From Perkinsus chesapeaki ATCC PRA-425 (lineage: Eukaryota; Protista; Perkinsozoa), in assembly GCA_013115145.1 (NCBI GenBank), contig JAAPAO010000393.1, positions 1 to 33,432 on the forward strand: a DNA stretch of 33,432 nt, written 5' to 3'. Below are positions 15,062 to 32,198 of this stretch, in pieces. The notes beneath the pieces are model-generated. The model did no database searches. It saw nothing but the letters and a program-made list of their open reading frames with translations, and had not been told where the DNA came from. The position numbers and the translations under genes are program-made. Each line of letters opens with the position of its first letter. The first letter of the stretch is position 1.

Positions 15062-15665
15062 TCAACTATATCTCAGCCATAGTATGACTTCTTCTGCTTC
15101 GCTCCACTCATCCCAATCATTCACTTTTCCACCCTCTGCCCCTCCATCAAAGGAGACCTCAATGTCATACACGAATTCAGGGTCATCTGGTCGAACCTGA
15201 CAAAACAGACATGGCCAGTTCACGGACTCGTGACGCCTAACCTGATTCTGCTTAAAAGTAACTTCCATCTGCGCCTTAACTTTTTGTAGTTTATCATCTC
15301 CGAGTTTATTCAGGTCTCTCTCCTCTGATTCTATCTGTTGCTCTTTCCCGCTTCGAGGAGCTCCATCTCTCAACCTTCTCACCAATCCAAGCAACTATCA
15401 CACCGAAATCGAATACTGTTACGCAACAATTTACCTGCTCATCAGATATCAGGTGTCGCGGTAGATAGTCTCGGAACCGCTTCCTCAATCTCTGAACTAT
15501 TTCTTCGGGATCAGACTGGGCATCAAGCCTCGGCAGAGGCATCCGCCTGTGATACAATTTCCCGTTCAATTTAGCGAACTCGAGGACGAGTGTAGGAGTC
15601 GGTGTGTAGAGTAAACCGATTCGTCTCGGCCTTATTGGGGACTCGTCATCTCCATACGAGGTCAT
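15062..15665 (-). CDS. CEP19: CEP19-like centrosomal/ciliary protein (3 exons)
   Basis: N-terminal RRIGLLYTPTPTLVLEF..KLYHRRMPL and C-terminal DLNKLGDDKLQKVKAQMEVTFKQNQVRPDDPEFVYDIEVSF..DWDE match the conserved CEP19 blocks (DLNKL.D..L...K..MD..F..N....DP.FVYD.EV.F). Confidence 0.85.
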
Positions 15666-15780: not shown

Positions 15781-18700
15781 CTAGTGTTGATAAAGCTTTC
15801 GCTCTCGTATAAAATCAAGTAGCTGAGGGTTCATACCAGTCACCCCTCCTTCCGGCGCCGCAGCTATGGCAGATCTTATCCGAGTTGAAGACAACGCTGG
15901 GTAAGGATCTGAATAGTCTTCCGCCACCGACACCTATAAAGGTCAACAATTCGCAAAGGGCAAGGGAAAGCTTCACCTACTTTTCGACGGATTCTTGGAG
16001 GAACCTCTTCAACAGCAGCCTTTAGGGGTTCGGTGTTCTGTGACCTCGGGAACACCAGAATGCTGGTGTCAAGATCGGCAAGCCCAATGAAATGGCGTGT
16101 GGTCTTATCTCGTGTACTCCCCTTTAAAGCCTTCATGAAGGAATCCTCTCCGCATAATATCATCGGCACAAGTATGTCAGTGGTCTTGGCAGCCATATCC
16201 CCGACAAGGGCATGCGCCAAGGCCTCTCGGTCGGCCCAGCGTTGGCTGTTCCTCGAGTAACCTGACGCGACTGACACTCTATCGCCTACGTCTGAGGCGA
16301 TGACGCGTTCTCGAAGCAGTTCCTGTCGGGTGGCAAGGGCGGAGGCTTTCGGCTTGGAAGGGTTGTTCTCAGCATTCGCAACCAGTATGACAGAAGACAC
16401 CAGACCATTAGACAACGCGTGCTCGACGACTGCCCAGTGGTTCTCGTGGATCGGGTCGAAGGTGCCGAAGAAGACGCCGACAAAGGTTGTTTTAGCGTTC
16501 TCGAAGGTGAACCGCTTCAATCCTTGCTCGGCAAGGTACCCCAAGGCCACCGTACGGGAAGTAGCCTCGATTGGCGATGTGAGCCAATACCTGAGTGAAG
16601 GTGAGGGACGCGCATAGATGGGGGATGCCTACCTGGCCTGGTTTCTAAGGCAGGTCTCGTTGACATCCCCGAGCCACTGACGAAACGTGGAGTACCTTAG
16701 GAGATTAATTCTGGATCGTCAGAAGACGGGTCAGAAGTTCGGTATTACAGTGTGCAAGTCATCGGGGCCAATGGCGTGGAAACATCCCCAGCGGCCAGGC
16801 TATCCCGCAGAGCCCTCAAGCTCGACTTTGCTCGACCGCCGGTGAGCCGACCGATACACACAAGCCAGCTGCTGCTCCTCAGTACAGAGGTATCTGACGC
16901 GGGAGCAAGAGTTCTGCTCCACAGGATCTTCCCCGATTCCTCACCTGAAGACGGCTGGACAAGTTTCACCTTGTGGAATAACTGACCAAGGCGAAACACT
17001 ACACTGCCGACCCACACGGCCACCACTGGGGCGGCCCCAATCTCTAGCAACAGTACGCTCGAGTGGTCCATGGCAAGAGCTTCAATGCCTTCAATTGCCG
17101 ACTCCAGCAACACTTTCCGGGCCGCGGGATCGAACTGACTATAAAACGGATCGACAAAGATCGTCGGATCGCGCAACGCCCTCACGCTGACGTGAGCAGT
17201 GCCAGCTGCGGGAGCGGGGTGGGATGCAGAGTCCCAAGTAGAGACATGGTCCGGATCGATGCCCACATGTTCTCTGAGGAGTTCCGACACTGTCGTTCGC
17301 CTGCATTCCTCCAAAGTTAGAGAGCACGTCACGGCGTCACCAATCGCTCTTGGCGGGATCGTTGGAAACTTATCGAACCGTATAAGCCTCTTTCGGACGA
17401 GATCTTTAAGCTCTTTTGCATTCCAAACCAGAGGACTGTAGACCACTGAGCTTGACGTGGGAATCTTGCGGTTGTTGTGGGAATCGAAGCCCGTCATCCT
17501 CCTGTAGGCCCCTGGGCAATCAGAGATCTGTTGTGTTGTCAGAATCAGCTCAGGCCACTCTGTAGAGGGTGAAACAGTGGGCCGTGGAGCTCCAGTGGAC
17601 CGTTCGTCCACGCTGGTCAAGGTGAAAGCAGCGCCGCTCGGTAGTTTTTTTCGGAGACCCACAAGGGCCACGTCCTCGTCATGAGCATGAACCCTATCAG
17701 TAACGGTGCCACGACTGACCCTCCTGCTGTCCACACCTCCAAGTCGACCAGCAGTGTCGGACGACAACAGGGGCTTCACCGATCTCAGGTCACACTTGTC
17801 CGGTAGGAGCTTAGAGACGTACTCGGCGATGGAACTCGAGGATGTCTTCCGTCTCTTCGTGTAGGGATGAGGGTCCGAGTCCTCGACATCTCGCCACCTC
17901 GCCAACTTGCCTTCAATCGCCGATGCCTGCCGACTTGCCAGCGATACCGCAGCCTGCTGGGCCGCAACGATAAACTCACCAAGACCTTTACCAGGGCAAG
18001 ACGGAAGCTGGAGCTCCCTCGTGGGGTCTGGACACGCTGGATATGCGAGCGTGAGTCACGTGGCCGTACCTTGAAGACCAAGGAAACCCTTTAGCCATTT
18101 CGCATCATCTTTGGCCAGGCCACGGAAGCCCAGACAAACCCAGTACCTATGGACACAACATTGCCAACTAAACAGCGACAGAGCCCCTACGTCTCACTGT
18201 TAGCAGGCTTGCTTGCCGCTGGCTTCACTATCTCGATCTTGTCGAACATGGAGCCAGCCAAACACAGTGCAGCAACAGTAGAGTCATCAAGGAGGGAATA
18301 CGCCTTCATAACACAGGAGCCACCGGCACCCAGCAGTCCAATGGCCAGAATAAGTTCTCGAACAATAAGGGGAAGGCAGAGACTCTCTTGCCTATACTAT
18401 TAGTTGATTCAAAGAGTCTGCTTCGCCAAAGGCCTACTTATTAGGGGCATACTGTACGTCCATGCTACCATCAGCCGTAACCAGTTGACACTTTCCTTCA
18501 GGTGCCCTACAACTATACCTGGACATCACTATTGGCTACTCGGATGGTTGAGAGGGAAATCTCACCATCTCCACAAGTCTTGGGCAGCACCTGCTTGGAG
18601 AATATTTCCGGAACCATCTGGGCCCGTCCACCTGAGGGAAGTGATAAGCCTGATGGAGACCAAAGTCTACCAGCGGTCCTGTGTCCTGCGATATAAGGCG

Positions 18701-19305
18701 TCATCGTCGACCATTTGCTCGAGGTCGTTCCCCTCATAGTAAGGGTTCAACGAGGCTCCCATCCACTTCCAGTCAGCCCTCGGTCTCGTAAGGGCTGAGC
18801 AAATCACCTTCACAAGCTACGCAGCGGTGATTACACAGATAAACGTTGAGAGCTGCGACGAAGCCGCCAGGGCACTCGCAGAGGTGCATGGTCCGGAGGG
18901 TGGCGGAATCTTGCTCTTCAGGACCAAGAAGCGATGGCCCGAATGTCGACAGTACTTCATAAAACTTAGCCCAAGCATTGTTGATCAGTGGCGCGTCCAC
19001 ACCAACTCGAGAACGTATCTGATACCGGTAAGGCAATCTGTATGAACATGTCGGCCTACTACCTCTTTGGTGAGGCCGTCAAGAGCATTATGGTGCTTAG
19101 AGAAGGCCCGCCACTCAGAGATGTCAACAGTGTCTATTTCATCCCTTGCTTTATTGAGGCGGAAACGGGCCTTCTCGACCGCATCATCTGCCGAACTCTT
19201 CCCCATCTTTTGTGAAGGTGCTTGCAGCAGCCCTCCTAACAAGCTCGAATCGTGCGGTAAATTGGGCAAGGGCAGTCGGAGGATCTCAACAGTTGGTTCG
19301 GCCAT
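15781..19305 (-). CDS. CMTR2: Cap-specific 2'-O-ribose methyltransferase (CMTR2-like; active plus degenerate RFM domain) fused to a C-terminal NadD/NMNAT-like HIGH-family nucleotidyltransferase domain
   Basis: Exons from ATG 19305 give CMTR2 motifs: NNAWAKFYE, MHLCECPGGF, WKWMGASLNPYYEGND, GPDGSGNI, LVTADGSMD, GSCVMKAY, KPAASKPANSETYWVCLGF (intact K-D-K-E). A second RFM-like segment follows (FRLGQLFHKVKLVQP..SWLVCIG). Introns 16696-16748, 16591-16632 and 15934-15980 then lead in frame to FFGTFDPIHENH..NPSKP..LCGEDSF..VFPR..LSSTRIR..FIRERKLY* (TAG 15781-15783). Confidence 0.8.
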
Positions 19306-19561: not shown

Positions 19562-22500
19562 TCAATCGGCCGCAATCTCATAGCCGATAGTCGAAGACCC
19601 GAGCCATCGCTCTGACTCTGCCACTGAGCAGTCACGTCGTGCGGAGTAGTCCGCCACTTGGTCCTTATTTATCTGTCCAACTGCGAAGTACTTTGCCTGA
19701 ACGAAGTATGTAAAGCGGAGGCCGCAAGTACTCACTTTTCCGTGGGCAAAACAGAGGGCGCACACGCTGGCTGCCGGTTGCATCATCAAAGATTCTGTTA
19801 AGACCATTTTACCCTGAATAAAAGTGTATCCTCGCCAACTTGGCATCGACCTTACTCCAGAGAGGCTCTCCGCATCCAGTAGCCTCCAAAGGGTTTCCTT
19901 CTCTCGGTGATCCGGTTGAGTTGGGTAGCCCGGGGCTGGCCGGATCCCAACGTATTTCACCTAACCGCGAAGATGCCACCAACATAGAGCACCTGGGCTC
20001 GACCTTAAGCATGTCCGAGAGCGATAGGTCCTCCTCTGGTACATAACCCCAAAACTGTGGGTCAGTACGTATCTTGTGATGAATGAGCTCCGCGAAAGCC
20101 TCTGCCAGGCGGTCAGCCAAGGCCTCCAGCATAATGGACTTATCTATGTCATTAGTAGCATCATAAACCTATTGTACCATGGAGAGCTTGAACGACGTTA
20201 AGATATACGCTCACTTTCTTCCGCTCCGCTACACCAACGCCTGCTTGACAGCAAAACATGGCGATGTGATCTGGCAGACCGGAGGACTCTGGGGCTACGA
20301 AATCACCTACAGTGCAACCGACTGTTAAGTGAGACCTGCGGATGAGCTAACCAAGAGCGAAGGTCTGATCCTGCTCGGTGTCCAGCTGCTGGCGAAGGCC
20401 ATAAAATGTCTCGATAAGATCACCTTCCTCGGAGAGGACCTACGAGGATCTCGCGCCGCTATCTGTTGTAATACTAGTTAGCTACTACCTTAACATCATC
20501 TCCAGACCCACATGCACGGTACACCCCAACAACTGCCGTAGCGCATATCCACTTCTCTCGAATAACCGTAGCGAGCAATTCCTAAGTGTACAGTTTAAAG
20601 AGGCGGTGCTCATCACCTCTACCTGGGCTTCCTCAAAGAGCTGCTTAGCCTCCTCACCAACCCTTTTATCGTCGAATATCTTCGGGTAGTCTTTATTAGG
20701 GTACCGTCCACGCAGCTGATATACCTGTTCAACCACAGCAGTAGGTAGAACAAGAAGCAGTGTAAGTCTTATGAAAACATAGTGAAGGCCTGCTAGGAAC
20801 ACTTGGGCACGCCGTTGTGCGGTCAAGTTACGGTTACGTCGTCCAATATATCTATGAACCCTGACCTGGAAGAATGGTGTCCAGTCTATATATTGGCTGA
20901 TCTCCTCCAGTGAGTAGTTGTCCAGGTATGTGTTACCAACCCTTCTAGGCGCTGGGGCTGGAGGATACTTTGCAAAGTCGATAGTGTACCTGAGAAAGAT
21001 GCCTACCTACGTCGCTCAATGGTATTAATGTAGGAACCCATAAAGGCTATTAGCTACCTCATCTTCCTAGCCTCATGTATAGGAAGCCATCTCTTATCAA
21101 CAAGTGTACTATAATAGTCCTCCCTCAAGGCATCATACTCCTCCTTTATATCCTCCATATACTCTATCTGACAACACGACAACCAATAAGCGCTACTGCA
21201 TTATGAGGGCCATGCCCTCCCAAGGTGGTTTCCCTCCCTTACGGCTAGTCTCCGTTTCCCTCAAAAGTACTAGGTGTTATGTAATTACTTACAGATCAAT
21301 ATTCTACATCTGCGCATCCCTCGCCCGGCCTACCCGCCGCTCAGGGTTCTGTATCAAGCTATTAACAACAACCACACTCCTACTGGCGTCCAGTACATGG
21401 ACCACTCCTCCTACAGGCACCACTCCCTAAAACACCACACAGTTGAAGGCAGCCTAACTCCTCGGAGGACCTTCTCTCCCGACCGCTCGCTCGCTTCGTA
21501 CTGCGGCCATATCTTCACTGCTGTGTGCTTACGGCTGGTCGTAGCACCTCCGATGAGCAAGGGGATCTGCATGCCCTCTTTTCGCATTTGCTGGGCTACG
21601 AATCTGCCATCGCATAACTGGGGATAGGCCATGCCCACCGCTGCTCGCTCCTACACCATCTCATCAAGACTAGGCGTAATTAAGCCGCTGAGACCAACCA
21701 CGTCAGCCTTCTCCTCCTGGGCTTTCTTAAGTATTTGGTCACATGGCACCATAACACCCATATCGATAACCTAACAAAAAACAATTACCTCCGTAATGTC
21801 CATCTTGATCAAGATATCCGATGGACCTTCCAGCATATCGACAAGGTAAGCATACAGAAGAACTCCAATTATTGATGATGCAGAGCAATGAGCAATCAAA
21901 CTTGACCTATTCGGTGTTGTTCCGCATTACCAATGACGAAGTGTATAATGTAGCCTTGTCGTCATCCTCCGACCCCAAATGCAGAGGATGCCTTCAAACC
22001 CCTTACCCTGAAGTTGTTGCAGCCAAGGACCACTCCAACGATATTCTTACCAATATCATGCACATCACCTAACATCATACACCATAAACCATCTCCCTGG
22101 TATATAGTATCTTACCCTTTACAGTTGCCAAAAGTACCGTACCATTCCAGTTGGGACGGTCGGGGTCCAGACCCTCCTCTAGGGCCTTACGTCTGTTCTC
22201 AGTTTCCATTATCGGTACTAAGTGCGCTACGGCTTTCTTCATCACCCTAGCAGACTTGATGACCTGAACACGACTGTTATGCTGATGATGCTGCTCGAGC
22301 CGCCACACCTCACCTGTGGGAGGAACATTTTTCCTGAACCAAAGAGATCACCAACCACTGACATCCCAGCCATTAGAGGACCCTCGATAACCTGAAAGCA
22401 TAGTACAAGCCAATAACAACAACCCGCTGCTGTTCCTGGCAGAGCCGCACAGCCCTCGGCAGCCAGAAGGCGTTATTACCTCCAAGGGCCGAAGTTGAAG

Positions 22501-25500
22501 ATCATCTAGGCACTCCTGTACATCACCAACTATATACTTGTCAATGCCCTTCACAAGACTATGTTCAAGCCTCTTCTCCACGCCTTGTGTCCTCCACTCC
22601 TCCACAGCCTTCACCGCTAACCCACCCAGCATAGCCCCCCATCACAGGGCATCCCCTCACCTCCAGTCTCCCCGCCTCCCTTTTGGGCCTTTTTCTCCTT
22701 CAATTCGCTGGCGAACTCTAGCAGCTTCTCGGTCGCCTCGGGGCTAACATTCATCACCACATCCTCCAACAGCCGCCTCATCTCATCCGGTATGTCCGTG
22801 TAGATCGGCAACGCTCCGGCGTTAACCTGTCCGAATCTTATTCCCCCTCGAACTGATGTTGCCTCTCACTATGGCCATACTGAGGCCTTTAGGAATGGCA
22901 TGGTACAGGAACACCGAGTGCATTGCCTCTCGAAGCTCAGTGAGGCCTCGAAACGAAAACGAGAGGTTCGAAAGACCTGAGACGGTTAATAGATGGATCA
23001 GCAACCGTGTCTCCGCGAGCAGCCTACCGCCGCTGGTGTAGCATCCGGGACATTTCCTCCGAACAACCTCAATAGCATCAATGAAGTCCTTAGCGTAGTT
23101 GTTATGTTCCTCCATGCCTGAGGAAGGCTGCTGATGGTGGTGCAGCTGCCTAAATGCTCATCACCTGTCGCTATGGTAAGAATGTTGCAATCAAAGATTA
23201 TGTCCCGGCCTTCGTAGCCACACCTCTCTGTGAGGATCTTATACGTCCTTTCGCATATCCGAACCTGATACCAGCAGCAGCACCACAAGTCAGATCCTCT
23301 ACAATGCTAAACGGCAAACTGAGAAGCATGTTTTAGACTTCTCCTTCGGCTATTGAGAATCTAGATGTAAAAGGATACTAGTAGAACATTACTACTTGAC
23401 AACTAGTAATAGTGTATATTGTAATGCGTTAGGAGGGGGAATAATATCCGATTATAACTACTGAAATTTACTATTATTCTGCCCAGTCTATTCGGTATCA
23501 ATACCGAGTTACCACTATAACACATACCAATACCCTTGCTTTCCCTCCCCCTCCTTCCCTACTCTATTACTACCTTATCCTCAAAGGTAGCAGCCTGACC
23601 TTGCTCATCAAACGCCATACACACCAGGCTGGCACCATATTTACGGACCTAATACCAATATTATACCTCCTAAGGGAAGTAGTAGCAGCAGTAGCACCAG
23701 CTTGGCATGTGATATAAAATCGTCCTCTCCCACTTTCAAAGATAACGAGTTTACTATGCACTTGCCCTGTACACACTGAAGGCCCTCTTCGATCACCTAA
23801 CAATAACAACAACAATCTAAGACCACCCACACGATGAGGACAAGTTAAACCGGAGATTGCCGTCTGGCGGAGGCGCTTTGGTATTAGTTCAATTTACGAG
23901 GTAGCCTTATATGTTAAAGAAACCAACAATGAGGGCCTCACACAACCCGTAGAGCTATTTGTCCATTTTGTCTCCCGTTAGGAATTATAATAATACTACA
24001 GAGAACGATTGAGTAATAATTGAGCAGCAGTACTATAGGATTGAGGAAATGCTCATACCCACCCACTCAAGAGTATCCTACCTTAAACTTGGAACTATCA
24101 ATCATAAACGGCACCCTCGCTATAGCTGGCTCAGTAACACATGATCTCATAAACCTGCCCATTGCCAACTGACCATCGATCAGATCAGCATCGAAGTTGA
24201 AGTCCAAAATCTGTGCTCCATTCTCGACCTTAAAACAACCGTTCTCCTCAGCGCCCTACCCGAACCTGTTCTACCTGTTCCTTGGCCACCTCCAACGCCT
24301 CATCCCACCGACTCTGCTCTACCATCTTTTTGAACCGCAGACTGCCCATAAGGTTGCACCGTTCACCAACGTTCACAAACCCCAGCTCTGGTGTGAGATA
24401 GAGCGGCTCCAATCCCGACAAGTGCATAACAGGATCATGCCGGACATGAAGGGGTCTCGGAGGGAAGCCCTAAAGCGCCTTACACTTGAAAAGCAAGACT
24501 AGCGCCCCCCAAGTCGGCTGCACATAGATAATTTATCGACAAATCGACCCTTGGCAATCCTCGATGAGTAATAGCAGCACACGAGCCGGATGTTTTCCCT
24601 TTTTCATTGGAATGGAGTAAATAAGCGAGTTAACTACTATGATTGTAACTAGGGTCTCCCGACTCACCTTAAGCCGATCATGAACCGCTTTAATGTGAGC
24701 CGGAAAGGTACCGCAGCAGCCACCAACCATATTGAGGAGATGGTCTTGGGCGTAAAGGACGAGGGACTCTCCAAAGGACTCTGGTGTCTCATCATAGCCA
24801 CCCATAGCATTCGGTAGCCCCGCATTAGGATACCTAGATACCGTCCCCTTATTACTCATACCGCCGCTCTCTTATACTACACATGAACATTGACTGTTGC
24901 CAGCTTTGCCAAGGTCTCGAAGAAGGGCCTCATTTGTGCCGCTCCCAGAGCGCAGTTGATCCCGACACACAGCGGCCGGGCGTGCTGAGAACAGGCCGAA
25001 GAGTACTGGTAAACACGACCGAAATGTCCTACCATAACCGAAACCAGAAACGCATCGATGGTTTGGCCAGACAAAGTGCGGCCACTCTGAAAGAGAGCGT
25101 TCAATCTCAACCATAAGAGTCCCTTACCTGATCCACGATCGTAGCCGATATTATTGTTGGCAGTCTAGGCTGTTCGGGATGATCCTCATAATAGCTATCA
25201 ATAGCAAAGAGGGCCGCCTTAGCGTTAAGAGTATCAAATATAGTCTCAACCAGTAGAACATCAGAGCCACCAGCTACCAATGCATCCACCTGAACTCCCC
25301 CTCGCACCACAGCTCCCTTCACCACCGCCCTACTTGCTCGTAATACGCCTTTACCAGCTCCGTCCACGTAACATTCCTAAAGCTAGAGTCCTCTACACTT
25401 GGAGATACGCTTAACGTCCGACTGGTGGGACCAATAGCTCCTGCTACCAGTCTTCTGATGCCCGTCTCGGCTCCCACCTACCGAACCCACCGTAACACAG

Positions 25501-26159
25501 AGCCAGTAGCCGTCGTCCCAGACCTCTTGGCAGGCTTGCTTGGCCAGCCTGGCCGCTTCGAAGTTGAGATCCCTCACTAGATGCTCACACTGATACTCTG
25601 CCTGTGATATGGTTGTGCCATTAAAGGTGTTTGTCTCTATCATATCAGCTCCAGCATTCAAGTACCTACATTAGGCTACAAGTGACCGAAAGATCTGTGT
25701 ACGGTACCGTGGGAAAATATGAGTTACAAAAGCCATGAGCATGAGCTTCAGGGGAGAGTAAACGAAATAACGCACAGCTCAATTATCATCCCTTTGCCCG
25801 GCACTACTCTTTATGGATCTTCACCACAAGCTCTGGTCTAGTAAGGCAAAGCAGGTCATTATCTCCTTTCAACTCCTTAGGATGATCCTTCAATATATCC
25901 CCTCGGAAATCTTCCTCCTGTAGACGCTCCGCTTGTATCCTACCCCACTCCGCCCTACACCACACCTCCACTTTATCAACCTACCTTGTTCCCATACCGC
26001 CATCCAAGAATACAATCCTCTCCGAAAACAGCTGACGGAGGTAGCTCGTCGACTCCGACTCCCCACCCGGATGCTACAACACCAAATCCTTACAACACCT
26101 GACCTTCCCCCGTTTCCTACGTCGGCATGAGAGGCGACCGGCGGCGCAATTTCACCCAT
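19562..26159 (-). CDS. metH: Cobalamin-dependent methionine synthase (intron-rich)
   Basis: ATG 26159: [28 protein letters not shown] and GGCCGT (Zn ligands), [48 protein letters not shown] (B12 DxHxxG), [38 protein letters not shown]. All MetH modules are in order. Confidence 0.97.
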
Positions 26160-26432
26160 TTAAAAACAACTACGTTGAACTCTCGAGGTATCCGTGGTCC
26201 AGAGCTCTGCTTTAGTCCAATAATTGACTTTAATAACTGCTAACACAAGACATACTATTGATAATACTCCCTTTATAGGTAATACTCTCTACTAACAAAA
26301 TACTACCAAACCTTTATCACACTTTATTCCTTCGGGAAAATATAAGACTTATGTCGTATCATAACGTTACTAGGGAGACCTAAGGGCAGATAGAGCCCCG
26401 CACATGGGGCAGCAGCAGCAGCGTGGCATTCC

Positions 26433-29400
26433 TTATCTCCTGCTACGGTCTCTCGAATCGCTTCTATCTCTTCTAGACCTGCGGGATCTATCACGGGAGG
26501 AGGACCTCGGACGGGCGTAGCGGCCTTCACGACTACGAGAGCGATCATCTCTGAGGAAGCAAGAAATGCTATCACCAAACCATCGCCAAAAGCCTCAAGA
26601 TTTCTTAGCGTCGTGTACTATAGCCGAGTCATCTACAGTAGTAGTGAAGACTGAAATGTACTCGAGACAGTGATGTCAAGACTTCATCGAATAGATCCCC
26701 ACAGTGGCTCATTAGTTAGGGACGACCCTCTACAGTAATAACCATTCGTTTATTATTTTGGGGTCCTTATAATACCCTTACTAATACTTATTACAATAAC
26801 CCACTGCTAATTCCTTCCGCTATTATTACCTGCTTCTGCGGTCCCTAGGACTAGCCTCCCTTCTCCTACTAGATCTACGCTCCGACTCCGATCTCGATCT
26901 ACTACGCCTCCTATCTCCACTGCGTGATCGACTGCGTCGGCGGCGGCTGCTATCTCTCGGACTCTCAGACCTATCTCTCTTGGGAGGTGACATCGGCTCC
27001 ACATCACTTCCCTCATCGACCTTCCCATTCTTCGAAGGCGACTTCTCGTCTGATCTGCGTCTCGGGCTATCCTTATCCACCGAAGCCGGGCTTCTGGCCC
27101 TATCGTCTTTACGCACAGATCTATCGCGCGAAATAGACCTGTCGCCACTGCGGGACATAGACCGTCCGCCACTCCTTGAGCGCCTTCTCTTGCGCTCCCT
27201 CGGAGATCTGTCGTCACCAGAGCGAGATCGGCGCCTAGAGCCACTTCTAGACCTTCGGGCTGCCTCAGCTTCCCTGGCAGCTCTAGCCTCCCGTTCCTCG
27301 CGCTCCCTAGCCTCCTGTTCCTCTTTCTGTTTGGCCAACATAGCGTCCTCCTCTTCAATGGATGGTAGGCCTAGACGCTCGCGACGCTTGGTCTCTATCT
27401 CAGGGTTACTATGGCGATTCAGGAACGGGCGGTGAATACCTCCTTTACCTACGAAAATAATTTAACAAGGACAACTGCACTACTACTAAATAAGAACAAT
27501 ATAAGCCATACATATAGTCCACATCAAACCACCACTATAGAGTTTAACAGCAAGTGCACTGTCCCATGCAGCAATGGCTATACCATATCTACTCGTTATA
27601 TCACAAATGATATCATAATATAGTCCCTCAAACCCAATTCCACCTTTATTACCTCTTTCTTTATCCTGTTCAATCTTCCTATGTATCCTGCCCCTAACCA
27701 TCTCCTCAGCATCATCTCTACGTCTCGAATCATAACAGAATATCAGCAGCCTCGGAGGAGGTCCATCTCTTGGACGCCGACGAGCTCTCTCTCTATCATC
27801 CCTCCAACTCGAATATCCCTTCCCCTTTCCTCTGCTGCCCCAACCACCTTTCCCTTTACCCCACCATGGACCATCAGATCGGACAAAGCTCTGATCGCAG
27901 CCATCAACAAAGCAAAATGTACCAGTGCGCTCTTCAATAGAGCGGAGCTCGCTGCCTTTATGACCGGTGATGAAACCGATGTATTCCTCTGGAGTCTCAA
28001 CTGCCGTCACATCCTCCCGGCCCTCCAATTTCACATTAACCTACCAGAACACTTCCACACATACACTAAGGAACAATTTCCAAAGTGAGAGAGATTTCGG
28101 CAAACTTAAGGCACCGACGCCTTCGAACTGCATCTACTATGGATTATAACGCATGACGAGGCCCCTCTATATTTTGCCAGAGCCCCTCATCTTCATGGTA
28201 GATACGTTGAGACTCGAGGTATATAGTATATCCATGCAAGACACATATAAGGCTTACACTTGCGGAGGCCCCAGACCAGACTATAACAGATCGAGTAGGA
28301 CAGTTAGAAACACACTTTCCGGAGGCGATTTCGACTGTACGACATGACCAGTTTCCCCTTTCTCCCAGCTCACCTCGCCTTCACGTTGATCGAGCAAGAA
28401 GTTGAGATAATCACGACCCCGGCGCCTCTCTGGCTTACTTCCAGAGATGAATGCCGTATAACCGATGTATCTAAACAAAACCAAACCTTTACCGACAGCA
28501 ACGGGTGAACCACAGCAAAATGAATCTCCTTTATATATTCTTATGCTTCGCTCCGCTAAGATAAGTGGAATATTTCCTTCCTCCACTGGGCACCTACTCC
28601 TCAGCTATTTTCAATCATGGTGATGGTGAATTCGATTAGTCCCTCGATCCCGCGAAATCGTCTCCGATCGAAGAGCATGATGATCTTTTCGGATTGAGCG
28701 TCTCCTCCTCCTCCGCCCGATCTTCCTCCTCTCAGTCCATCTCTCAAATTATCGATCACATTGTCATTCCACCAAATCACTGCCACCACTTTACTCAGTT
28801 TCCACTGACGGACAAATCGATCAACATGGCCCCGCCACTGCCGTCGTCCTATCTCCGTCACCCCCATCCCTAATAAACCCCTTATATTCCCCCAGCCTAC
28901 TCAATAATAGCTCCGCTGGCTCTCTCCAACTTCTTCCTAGTAGCCCCGCGCCTTCCCAGAGCGTAAGTAAACTGTGCCTCCGTCCTGCCAACACATATCC
29001 ACAGCAATCCCCAGTAAAAGTAACCGCTACATTTTAACTGTTGTTAGTCCGAGTTTGCCGCCATGAGTGTCATCCAGGTTCCATCTCTCGCGATGGTCCA
29101 AAAAGAAGCCCGGAGACTTGGACTCGATCGCCGACATCAACTGAGCTACCATATTGCCTATCACAGCCTCCACTCCTTCACCTTCAGTTGTGCAATGCGG
29201 CGTCCTCGTGTGGGCCCCAGTATAATAAGCTTCTCGATCTCATCAGAGCGGCCTCTGACTCGTGGCCCAGCGTCCCCTCCAACGTCCTTATCTGAACCAG
29301 CGGCGGTAATGCAGTATCTCAGACTCCCTATCACAAGTCTACCTTGGAAGAACATAAGGGTTTCTGTCTCCTCCTCTAAAGCATGTAGAGTAGATCTCTC

Positions 29401-30221
29401 ACGACCAGTAACATAACCAATGGTATCCTGAGGCACCTACCACACACGACAAGACTTTCCCCCCCCCCCCACACAATTCAACCTAATTCCAATAAAAAGT
29501 TTTTGTTGGGATTAAAAATAACGTGTCTTTTGAAACACATCATATCACATTATTATGATTAAAAACAGTCTTCATAAATTCGTGAATGAAATTCCCCGTA
29601 TTGTCGCTGGAACTAGTCGAGCAAGACTCCTCGGCATAGATCCTGCACCAGCAGTGATGGGCAGCAGCAGCAGCTGCAGCTCACTTCTCTGGTGGTGACT
29701 CTGTAGCCCGGCCCTACTCTCCCATATTACGTCTATCCAACTACAGTCATCACGCTCCTCCGGGTCAAGATCAAGCGGCTCATTCTTCTTATTAAGAAGG
29801 AGAAAGCAGATGTAGTCTCGGCCAAGCTCCCTGTTACGTGCTGGCCCTCTCAACTCCACATTAGAGTCGCCACCCTCTGACAAAAATGACAATTAAAAAG
29901 AGCGGAGCGGAGCACATCGGACTACCAGTATTAACAAGCTCGATATCGCAGTCGGCGGCATTCTCCAATTTCCTTTTAGTACTGCCACCTCTCCCCAATA
30001 CCAAAGCTGCCTCATCTGACTTAACCTTTATAACAGACAGGCCCTCGGCTCCAGGATCCGACGCCTTCGATGACAGAGAGCTAGATCTGAAAATATATAT
30101 TCAATTACTAAGAGGGCTCCCAAACCTACCTGGATCTCGACGAGCCGGACCTAGAGCCCGAGCGACTACCGCTCTTCCCCCTCCTACTGCTGGCGGAGCT
30201 ACGGGAGCGAGAGCGAGGCAT
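26433..30221 (-). CDS. Four-KH-domain RNA-binding protein with N- and C-terminal RS-rich regions
   Basis: ATG 30221 MPRSRSRSS..; KH-like motifs LVLGRGGSTK, YVTGRERST, YALGRRGATR, FITGHKGSE; long RS/RD tail. A last exon (DDRSRSREGR..RDRSRR*, TAA 26433-26435) joins in frame via intron 26551-26829. Confidence 0.85.
29459..29470 (-). repeat. G12 homopolymer (sense strand) in an intron of the KH/RS gene
   Basis: Twelve consecutive C on the + strand, about 20 nt upstream of the 3' splice site at 29437. Confidence 0.9.
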
Positions 30222-30489
30222 GCCTTAACTAGGGACACTGTGGAGGTCAGTGTGATGCGGTCGTCAACTCAACAACAGTGGAAGATAAATGAATTGGTGA
30301 GCAGGATTAAAAATGTGTAATGATAAGAAGTGATATGCTGCCACGTGAACCCGAGTTACGGAATGATTACATCTTCAGAGTCGCTCAACACTTCAATCCG
30401 AGCAAGGCATAAAACCGAATCACGAATGTGGCAATTTTTCTATGGCACAGCAGTAGCAGTAGTCTCAGCACCGGACGATATCGATGCGT

Positions 30490-32198
30490 TCAGATTCTTG
30501 AATTCTCCACCGCTCCCGAGAGCCCATAATCGTTCGACCGTTCACGAGCCTCATCATCATCGTTTGTAAGGAAGTCCTGGTAGGAGGGATACCTACTAGC
30601 ATTCTTCCTCAGAACATCAGTGATAGGACCAAGCACTCTACTGAAGGCTTCGCGATCGACCGAGAGGACCTATGCCGACGACTATACAAGTACACGGCAG
30701 CGCGGCAAATGCCTACCCGACATCCATCATCTCCAGCCTTAATCGTGGCCTTACGTGGCTCTCCTGGCTTTAGTAAAGCAATCTCACCGAAGTACTCCCC
30801 GGGCGTAGTATATTTCTTAACCTAAGATGCCATCTTCATCGACAGGCTAGCAGCAGCGTGAGACTACCTCCACTTCACCCTCCTCACCAGACATGAACGC
30901 GGTACATTCACCGTCCTCCAGTACATAGAAACTGAACACAAAGATTGTCCCGTATGGACCTGGGACCTGGTCTTCTTACTTGTCCCCAGTGGTATCCCCT
31001 TGAGTCACTATAACCTCGCCTTTCTTAAAGACCTCTGATGTTAGCATGTCCGATAGTTGAGACAGCTCGAACCTGTACAATGACACTAACACTCTATGAG
31101 AGCCAATAGACTACTTGTTCAGATCAGCCAGGATCGGCACCTTCTCCAGGAACCCCTCATACTCCTTCTTCTTGATATTCTCACTCGTCACCACCATCAA
31201 CTGGAAGCAGTCTCTATCCAGGCACCTACACCCCAGACACGATCTCCATAATGTGCCGATCAACAACAGGACTAACCACAGTTTGGCGTCAGATGTGGCG
31301 GTGACAGTAGCAGCTCTCGGAGCGTTGTACATCAGGGCTAGCTCCCCAAATGATGACCCTGGCCCACACTCCATCACCTACATAGAAGTATCTTTCACCG
31401 CAGCTGATGCACGGATCTACCTTCACTGGCTCCTTATCCCCACGCTTAACATAGATATCAAAAGTGCCTTCATCAACTATATAAAACGCATCTCCAAAGT
31501 TGCCCTGATCACCACGTCGTAAGCAGCCCTCCGATCTCATGTGGCAGCCTACCTGTTGGATGACACATTCCCCTTTAGTGACATCCCTCCTCCGCATCGC
31601 CATGACAACCTTCTCGATGTCGCGCTCTCGAAGATGACCAAAGAGAATCTGATACCCACATTCCCACCCTATCCCCGCCCACTTCCCCGCTTTACCTGTC
31701 TCTTGCCGCTCTCATCAGATGCCATCATCTTTTTAATGGCTTCTATCTCCTCCGGTGTCTTATGGTACATAGGGGCCCTCCAACTGTCCATTCTCTCCAC
31801 AGTGCATGCCTCAGCCGACACTCCAGCTCGTCGCCCACTAGCCTTCTGTACTGTTATCCTATGCTCCTCCTCCTACATAGACAACAACATTCCCCGTCTC
31901 TGGTCACCCTCTACTACCAACCTCCTTATCATCAGAGACGCCAACTGCAGCGCCAGAGGGAGATGAGTCCCTTTCGCTTATAGGACTGCCGACATCTATG
32001 GTCACTGGGGCAGGCGGCAGAGACGTCCCAGCTGTGGCTGCCACAGTGTCCGAAATAGTCGATCGAATGTCCAGCTAATTCAACTAATCCCTGTCGGTCG
32101 ATTGTCATCCCTATTACATGCTGGCTGCCATCAGGTGGGGGCGGGGATGGGTCGCTGTCCGATCCTGGCTTCCCTTTGCTGCAGAAGTTGTTACCCAT
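30490..32198 (-). CDS. PKAR: cAMP-dependent protein kinase regulatory subunit
   Basis: MGNNFCSK N-terminus; inhibitor motif GRRAGVSAE; [20 protein letters not shown]; [22 protein letters not shown]; frame-consistent introns; TGA 30490-30492. Confidence 0.93.

Follow-up and report, generated by a model that had tools for sequence, protein, structure and literature searches.

The trypanosome protein TbCgm1 combines a guanylyltransferase with an N7 methyltransferase. TbCe1, a recapping enzyme of the same organisms, consists of an RNA kinase and a guanylyltransferase, and in trypanosomes, which like the lineage studied here use spliced-leader trans-splicing and a hypermethylated cap, the cap-forming transferase is found fused to cap methylation or kinase activities (PMC11417388). 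Cap 2'-O-methyltransferases carry non-catalytic enzyme-like domains as well: in CMTR2 (FTSJD1; adrift in Drosophila) the catalytic RFM domain is followed by a non-catalytic one, and CMTR1 bears a C-terminal nucleotidyltransferase-like domain that has the capping-enzyme fold, is inactive and assists the function of the protein (PMC3941023). Domains of the NMNAT type are also known in fusions, as in NadR and NadM-Nudix, where they are joined to a P-loop kinase or to another nucleotide enzyme. Here we describe a gene in a 33,432-nt stretch of Perkinsus chesapeaki ATCC PRA-425 DNA (contig JAAPAO010000393.1, positions 1 to 33,432 of the forward strand; the whole stretch is referred to as the window) that is predicted to join a CMTR2-type methyltransferase to a NadD/NMNAT-like nucleotidyltransferase, hereafter the transferase. 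This transferase belongs to a small clade that is recurrently fused to Abd1/RNMT-type N7 methyltransferase, adenylate-kinase-type and CMTR2-like domains in varied orders.

The gene lies on the minus strand, at 19305-15781. Its 11 exons form, after splicing, a single open frame of 1029 amino acids that begins with an ATG at 19305 and ends with a TAG stop at 15783-15781. All ten introns are of the GT-AG type and 33-53 nt long; intron 2 (40 nt, 18834-18795) was placed from the model of the P. olseni gene. The sequence-only reading of this DNA had led one frame from the methyltransferase into the transferase through introns at 16696-16748 (53 nt) and 16591-16632 (42 nt) and a 63-nt linker exon, and these coordinates turned out to be exact. 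It had also described both introns as canonical and of local size, and indeed their lengths and donor and acceptor forms match those of the other eight introns of the gene. The parts of the gene are as follows.

15781..19305, minus strand: whole coding region, in the order CMTR2-type catalytic RFM, putative non-catalytic RFM, linker, NadD/NMNAT-like nucleotidyltransferase
19305-19063, 19018-18835, 18794-18671 and 18631-18566, minus strand: exons 1-4, predicted catalytic cap 2'-O-methyltransferase domain
18518-18438, 18391-18191 and 18146-18070, minus strand: exons 5-7, the same domain, so that exons 1-7 together cover 18070..19305
18036-16749, minus strand: exon 8 (1288 nt), a low-complexity spacer followed by the RFM2-like domain; C-terminal end ...APMTCT/L
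16748-16696, minus strand: intron 8 (53 nt, GT-AG), ct/GTAATA...CCTAAG/gt
16695-16633, minus strand: linker exon 9 (63 nt), coding for (L)YSTFRQWLGDVNETCLRNQA(R)
16632-16591, minus strand: intron 9 (42 nt, GT-AG), ag/GTAGGC...ACTCAG/gt, with an in-frame TAG at the donor
16590-15981, minus strand: exon 10, core of the NadD/NMNAT-like nucleotidyltransferase
16466-16437, 16367-16347 and 16244-16224, minus strand: exon 10 motifs GTFDPIHENH, NNPSKPK and QRWADRE
16154-16137 and 16055-16041, minus strand: exon 10 motifs CGEDSF and VFPRS
15980-15934, minus strand: intron 10 (47 nt, GT-AG); the public model P0097 has the same junction
15933-15781, minus strand: exon 11, C-terminal subdomain with LSSTRIR at 15894-15874 (ISSTxxR motif), the family C-terminal ...LLDFIRERKLYQH and the TAG stop

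Comparison with related sequences indicates that the fusion is very probably real. A syntenic orthologue is present on a 25.6-kb Logan contig (L001) from a P. olseni-like organism, with 58-75% amino acid identity to the P. chesapeaki protein. In L001 the GT donors and AG acceptors of the two junction introns are at identical sites, and the stop for the transferase is in the same position. The two introns are 51 and 49 nt long in L001, compared to 53 and 42 nt in the window. Consequently, each species has one junction intron whose length is not a multiple of three (the first in the window, the second in L001), and in both the reading frame is preserved only through splicing. At 63 nt, the linker exon has the same length in both Perkinsus species; its DNA identity (70%) equals that of the flanking exons (70-71%) and exceeds that of the introns (60% and 45%), and over its 22 codons there are 9 synonymous and 7 non-synonymous differences.

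More distant homologues point in the same direction. Five intronless homologues of 552-591 residues (P0002, P0004, P0006, P0008 and P0019) align in one piece from the RFM2-like domain through the linker to the transferase C-terminus, with E-values of 1e-38 to 1e-45. In this alignment their ...PPVCF.DP....WL..VNAQL... lies opposite the window's ...APMTCTL/YSTFRQWLGDVNETCL..., and the linker motif WL..VN(E/A) is continuous both in these homologues and in dinoflagellate proteins. Using phmmer, we aligned residues 700-1011 of the spliced model uninterrupted with P0017 (807-1138), P0009 (525-833) and P0015 (746-1008). The dinoflagellate proteins aligning across both junctions derive from transcript assemblies and from genomes, and their sources include Alexandrium monilatum, Prorocentrum cordatum, Effrenium voratum, Amoebophrya, EukProt Trinity contigs and near-full-length Logan contigs. 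When the 386-residue open reading frame was compared with dinoflagellate proteins by BLASTP, the matches were near noise (best E 0.09); the homology is clear only with the spliced model and phmmer. We rejected a pseudogene in view of the intact frame, the intact motifs and the 75-86% identity to the orthologue.

The intronless RFM2-transferase genes are located on compact eukaryotic metagenome contigs (L003, L004 and L005/L006), next to genes for Use1, RFC/Rad17-like proteins, a protein kinase and PP1. They always adjoin an RFC/Rad17-like AAA gene, and they have in common with Perkinsus an RDKTTRHFIG insertion.

The fused gene has also found its way into public annotation. Protein P0097, named 'FtsJ methyltransferase domain containing 1 [Perkinsus chesapeaki]' and 1178 residues long, is letter-identical to our spliced model over almost its whole length, including the junction between the CMTR2 part and the transferase, where it uses the same two introns (8 and 9). 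Elsewhere it departs from the model at two places. It treats 14 conserved residues (GQLFHKVKLVQPSS) as an extra intron, thereby removing the conserved FRLGQLFHKVKLVQP segment, and it joins the C-terminus of the transferase onto the downstream CEP19-like gene, losing the conserved ...MNPQLLDFIRERKLYQH end. The CEP19 extension is probably an annotation over-merge. We rejected it for our own model because it deletes the conserved C-terminus of the clade and because each of the two species has a stop and a new ATG at this place.

As for the methyltransferase part, the sequence-only reading had seen a complete CMTR2-like enzyme with an intact K-D-K-E, and this was borne out. The catalytic residues are K99 (AWAKFYE), D222 (TADGS), K262 (VMKAY) and E299 (ANSET), accompanied by the S-adenosylmethionine (SAM) motif LCECPGGF, and a Pfam scan detects FtsJ fragments in exons 1-7. 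The closest solved relatives are African swine fever virus EP424R (8.5e-22) and human CMTR1 (2e-13). Among named proteins, matches to CMTR2/adrift reach E-values of 1e-48 to 1e-54, the closest being apicomplexan 'adrift-FTSJ'/CMTR2 proteins (about 1e-53), followed by a JGI 'cap2 methyltransferase' (2e-50) and vertebrate CMTR2 (1e-39 to 1e-48, with 36% identity over the catalytic domain). By sequence, the closest named relatives of the first domain are thus CMTR2 proteins and not CMTR1 or the FtsJ enzymes acting on rRNA and tRNA, and the domain shares with CMTR2 the N-terminal RrmJ/FtsJ fold, the K-D-K-E residues and the SAM motif.

The second, degenerate RFM domain proposed earlier is tentatively recognizable, with its catalytic K and E positions replaced and with weak fold matches (E about 2e-3). 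Its core covers about 16772-17314 in exon 8, with the motif FRLGQLFHKVKLVQP at 16996-16967. An AlphaFold2 (AF2) model of the C-terminal third of this exon, built from a shallow alignment, has a mean pLDDT of 64. The only structures it matches are FtsJ-type methyltransferases (FtsJ/Spb1/CMTR1/EP424R) and human CMTR2 at residues 517-710, the latter being a weak mapping; human and mouse CMTR2 match at 512-715 with TM below 0.35 and E about 2e-3. A search of the RFM2 profile against PDB sequences gave no match. What distinguishes the Perkinsus protein from CMTR2 is the additional C-terminal nucleotidyltransferase of about 250 residues, which we did not find in vertebrate or apicomplexan CMTR2 (hmmsearch E above 0.3). 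Of the groups in which the co-occurrence of the two domains had been proposed to be sought, dinoflagellates and the P. olseni-like L001 have the fusion, and apicomplexan CMTR2 proteins are without the transferase.

In the dinoflagellate tri-domain proteins P0017, P0018, P0015, P0007 and P0014, the first RFM domain (N-terminal residues 60-340) lacks the catalytic K, D and K as well as the SAM motif, which are substituted by AWCQAYE, HIGHSAPAW and CLCQSF, while the N7 methyltransferase and the transferase are intact. With these residues and the SAM motif lost, the dinoflagellate first RFM appears to be a pseudo-enzyme scaffold; the Perkinsus one is intact.

The transferase matches the Pfam family CTP_transf_like (PF01467) with an E-value of 6e-6 and TIGR00125 with 8.6e-7. 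Taken alone, the window's domain has marginal matches in PDB (NadD-like, E 0.08), while the profile of the whole clade matches Bacillus subtilis NadD (4e-13) and human NMNAT1 (6e-13), with phosphopantetheine adenylyltransferases behind at about 1e-7. We also used an AF2 model of the homologue P0002, which is 34-36% identical to the window's domain and has pLDDT above 90 over the transferase. In a Foldseek search of this model against PDB, all top-50 matches were NadD or NMNAT structures, with E-values down to 9e-11 and TM up to 0.82, the latter to Bacillus anthracis NadD. Read from this homologue's model, the fold is that of a HIGH-type Rossmann-like nucleotidyltransferase. A shape search of the ESM Atlas returned only bacterial NadD-like clusters. 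Together with the motifs GTFDPIHENH (residues 818-827) and LSSTRIR (993-999), both invariant or nearly so in the clade, these matches confirm the earlier description of a full NadD-like domain. The signature of the canonical mRNA capping guanylyltransferase (covalent nucleotidyltransferase superfamily), the mRNA_cap_enzyme Pfam domain with its KxDG lysine, had no match in the window pieces or in the 26 related multi-domain proteins scanned.

The likeness to NadD and NMNAT extends from the fold to the GxFxPxHxxH and SSTxxR motifs, the N..P.KP segment and the C-terminal ...LY. The clade keeps as invariant columns of its core G, F, P, H, N, H, K, R, W, G, D and R (G.F.P.H.NH...K...R...W...G.D...R), and its C-terminal HP..v..yi....LY motif is also retained throughout. 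Between the two Perkinsus species the transferase is 75-86% identical, compared to 58-59% in the middle of the protein. Nevertheless, the clade stands apart from the two known families. It has HENH in place of HxGH, and the segment corresponding to the SYTxDT-type nicotinate site of NadD is replaced throughout by an invariant W..RE. In the profile alignment the invariant Trp is opposite the Trp of the human NMNAT1 KEWKET segment, which we take to be W92, contacting the nicotinamide ring. Scores stayed below those of the curated families: the NadD equivalog TIGR00482 gave 28.1 bits, with a cut-off of 112.45, and the PRK00071 models, which have cut-offs of 150-240, gave 14-25 bits.

A full HMMER scan of 1.84 billion representative proteins (E below 1e-3) returned only 80 members of the transferase clade, from Perkinsus, dinoflagellates and compact-genome eukaryotes. 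Unlike NadD and NMNAT, these proteins were always found in fusions with cap enzymes or with a kinase. Domains were assigned from Pfam scans of 26 members and local domain searches of all; the resulting counts, which are approximate and include a few later cluster-mates, are given below.

CMTR2-like + transferase + cap guanine-N7 methyltransferase: 8
transferase + N7: 6
N7 + transferase: 2
transferase + kinase + N7: 3
N7 + transferase + kinase: 2
transferase with kinase only: 15
RFM2 + transferase: 9

The multi-domain proteins come from Alexandrium, Prorocentrum, Effrenium, Symbiodinium, Cladocopium, Amoebophrya and MMETSP/Trinity transcripts. Their N7 partner is an orthologue of Abd1/RNMT, labelled 'ABD1' in Symbiodinium and matching fungal Abd1 with 1e-20 to 1e-26. 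The kinase partner is a mononucleotide kinase of the AK1/UMP-CMP type (E 6e-27), and its identification as a polynucleotide 5'-kinase, which would make it a TbCe1-like recapping module, was rejected on this ground. A tree of 46 transferase domains is divided into two well-supported halves, one RFM-linked, which includes the window, the intronless group and the dinoflagellate tri-domain proteins, and the other kinase-linked. Since the N7 methyltransferase is fused to members of both halves and in different domain orders, this fusion must have arisen more than once. The more general expectation of the sequence-only reading, that the transferase is tied to cap biology, has been strengthened considerably: the clade is fused to the guanine-N7 methyltransferase in several independent orders. 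The window itself has neither an N7 methyltransferase nor a kinase exon downstream in any of the six frames.

The kinase-linked branch (P0026, P0032, P0042, P0028, P0057, P0011 and others) occurs in dinoflagellate genomes and transcriptomes. The N7 methyltransferase is often added to these proteins, in the orders NT-KIN-N7 and N7-NT-KIN (NT, transferase; KIN, kinase).

Our preferred reading is that this is one real gene whose main product is a predicted 1029-residue protein combining a CMTR2-type methyltransferase with a catalytically competent transferase; we would give it a probability of about 0.6. A number of points weigh against it. RNA spanning the junction was not found in three tiny runs, from which one contig could be placed, in exon 1 only. 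P0097 gives no independent support for the fusion, as it merges the CEP19 gene wrongly at the same locus. A conserved ATG upstream of the junction, together with a stop at the donor, leaves room for the CMTR2 part and the transferase to be produced separately. On the functional side, the argument proceeds from domain association, and a mononucleotide kinase as partner is no less compatible with a role in small-molecule nucleotide metabolism than with a transferase that acts directly on RNA. Furthermore, canonical capping enzymes have been reported in dinoflagellates (10.1101/2024.02.20.581179), so that the pathway has no missing step for which a new enzyme would be needed. According to unpublished data cited in PMC8131947, NadD and NadR of E. 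coli did not cap RNA in vitro.

Two of these points lead to the idea that the CMTR2 part ends at the TAA at 16747-16745 and that the transferase is made separately, either from M751, after spliced-leader trans-splicing within the gene, or from some other start, with a fused frame that is minor or non-existent. The sequence-only reading had noted that no in-frame ATG precedes the NadD motif. This is true of the NadD exon and the linker exon, but the spliced frame does have M751, an ATG at 16762-16760 (...APMTCTL) located 14 nt 5' of the intron 8 donor and conserved in L001, which may be an internal start for a stand-alone transferase isoform. The stop overlapping the donor is likewise found in both species, as TAA in the window (16745-16748) and TGA in L001 (7284-7287). 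In the window this TAA (16747-16745) means that a retained intron 8 would end the protein after the CMTR2 part; retention would then give a clean CMTR2-only protein, and it may act as a regulatory switch. The RNA matches in exon 1 but not at the junction, the existence of short stand-alone homologues (P0003, 296 residues; P0010, 215 residues) and the tendency of the annotation pipeline to over-merge genes at this locus also fit separate products. We nevertheless consider such an arrangement very unlikely. In dinoflagellate transcripts, as in the intronless homologues, one uninterrupted open reading frame covers RFM2, linker and transferase. Between the two Perkinsus species, conservation extends to the linker exon and to both splice sites, and only splicing preserves the frame. 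P0010, which has a 561-residue cluster-mate, is probably a fragment.

Other alternatives accept the fused protein and differ in what the transferase does. It could be a true NMN/NaMN (nicotinamide or nicotinate mononucleotide) adenylyltransferase that supplies NAD, or that uses 5'-triphosphorylated RNA beginning with A (pppA-RNA) in place of ATP to produce NAD-capped RNA, the fusion serving to co-localize it with the cap enzymes. NadD and NMNAT are its nearest relatives by both sequence and structure, the invariant Trp is aligned with that of the NMNAT1 KEWKET segment, the joining of the transferase to a P-loop kinase in some members is reminiscent of NadR, and post-transcriptional NAD capping by NMNAT-like enzymes has been proposed, although no such enzyme is known (PMC8131947). 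We regard this explanation as unlikely, given that 28 bits are far under the curated NadD/NMNAT cut-offs (112 bits), that W..RE replaces the SYTxDT-type nicotinate site, that the kinase partner is of the adenylate/UMP-CMP type and not a ribosylnicotinamide kinase as in NadR (the window gene having no kinase at all), and that the recurrent partner, a guanine-N7 cap methyltransferase, would have no substrate in an NAD cap. This partner points to G-cap chemistry and, taken together with the low NadD scores, makes the NAD/NaAD or metabolite-cap role suggested by the sequence-only reading possible but not favoured by the data. Another idea is that the NMNAT-like pocket, built for a 5'-5' linked dinucleotide, holds without turnover GpppN/m7GpppN or a nucleotide effector and thereby positions or regulates the methyltransferases. 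In a comparable way, catalysis is assisted by the second RFM in CMTR2 and by the guanylyltransferase-like domain in CMTR1; non-catalytic enzyme-like domains are known from cap 2'-O-methyltransferases (PMC3941023), and the dinoflagellate first RFM of the same protein, having lost K-D-K, reveals a tendency toward pseudo-enzyme domains. Yet about 30 diverse members show little or no variation in the His pair of HxxH, the Arg of SS..R or the conserved K, R and D, and we judge a purely binding role to be quite improbable. CMTR1 also differs in this respect, as its domain has the capping-enzyme fold and is inactive, whereas the Perkinsus domain has the NMNAT fold with catalytic motifs intact.

Repeated independent fusion to enzymes that act on GpppN-RNA or on the cap-adjacent ribose, coupled with strict catalytic conservation, suggests that the transferase acts on the cap or on nucleotide precursors. 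Based on this pattern, we lean slightly toward the transferase being a part of the cap machinery with a catalytic role and not a housekeeping NAD synthase; plain NAD supply appears less likely than a cap-linked role in nucleotidyl transfer. Any single chemistry that might be specified is doubtful.

Enzymes with HxxH and ISSTxxR motifs transfer a nucleotidyl group to a phosphate, producing a 5'-5' pyrophosphate-linked dinucleotide, as in the cap. The transferase would make, or with pyrophosphate reverse, such a 5'-5' link between a nucleotide and a phosphate acceptor. The molecules that it joins would either sit at the 5' end of an RNA or be bound for it: a nucleoside triphosphate and 5'-diphosphorylated RNA (ppRNA), 5'-triphosphorylated RNA (pppRNA) and GDP or 7-methyl-GDP (m7GDP), or a free cap dinucleotide. 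In the reaction of pppRNA with GDP/m7GDP, the fused mononucleotide kinase could supply the diphosphate. The methyltransferase domains would receive the product in cis, and the heavily modified spliced-leader cap is a plausible place for this. One tentative form of this proposal is that the HENH clade represents a non-covalent HIGH-type enzyme for RNA 5'-end capping or recapping, which builds the 5'-5' polyphosphate bridge and leaves the N7 and 2'-O methyltransferases to finish the cap, possibly specifically on the spliced leader. Candidate reactions may include GTP with ppRNA, pppRNA with GDP/m7GDP, and formation of an NAD-like cap from pppA-RNA. The logic of the dinoflagellate transferase-kinase-N7 and transferase-N7 proteins would then resemble that of TbCgm1 and TbCe1, with the difference that the trypanosome transferase is a covalent lysyl-GMP capping enzyme, while the Perkinsus and dinoflagellate one is of the non-covalent HIGH type, is accompanied by a mononucleotide kinase and is known here from sequence alone.

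The surroundings of the gene are conserved. The order MetH, CMTR2-transferase, CEP19 is common to the window and the P. olseni-like contig. MetH (a B12-dependent methionine synthase, recognized by its activation domain) is encoded directly upstream on the same strand, at 19562-20132 and beyond in the window and at 3762-4329 in L001, and the CEP19-like gene (Pfam PF14933) is next downstream on the minus strand, at 15062-15665 of the window. Plus-strand GC skew is strongly negative over about 11 kb (about 21000-32000; -0.16 to -0.33 per kb window), unlike the remaining part of the window. Exon 1 is matched at 19114-19296 by a 189-nt contig of run X1, a 454 'RT-PCR' marine metatranscriptome, and the 183 aligned letters show zero differences. 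This exact match indicates that a P. chesapeaki-like organism, or its RNA, was present in the marine sample.

The sequence-only reading knew of no fusion of this kind. In databases such fusions do exist, as P0097 in public annotation and as related fusions in UniRef and transcriptomes. In the literature that we searched, we found no description of a CMTR2-NMNAT-like or NMNAT-like-RNMT fusion. To our knowledge, every cellular m7G cap described so far is the work of a covalent lysyl-GMP capping enzyme. A preprint states that dinoflagellate capping enzymes occur 'without fusions', and describes how the dinoflagellate/Perkinsus lineage relies on post-transcriptional control and on a spliced-leader cap that is heavily modified (10.1101/2024.02.20.581179). 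No post-transcriptional enzyme for NAD-type or other nucleotide caps is known, NMNATs being only speculative candidates (PMC8131947). Against this background, the fusions of the clade are pointing to an undescribed step in cap chemistry.

Perkinsus infects oysters and clams, and it can be both cultured and transfected. A cap-enzyme domain of a parasite that is not present in animal or apicomplexan CMTR2 is therefore of practical interest. Should the domain prove to be an ordinary NMNAT, there would remain a curious but modest domain fusion. Otherwise, there is a reasonable though unproven prospect that the gene encodes a new kind of cap enzyme, a predicted NMNAT-type enzyme built into cap methyltransferases across a whole lineage that includes Perkinsus, Syndiniales and core dinoflagellates, and it would provide a concrete protein for probing metabolite capping, the metabolism of cap dinucleotides, or cap synthesis by alternative or salvage routes.

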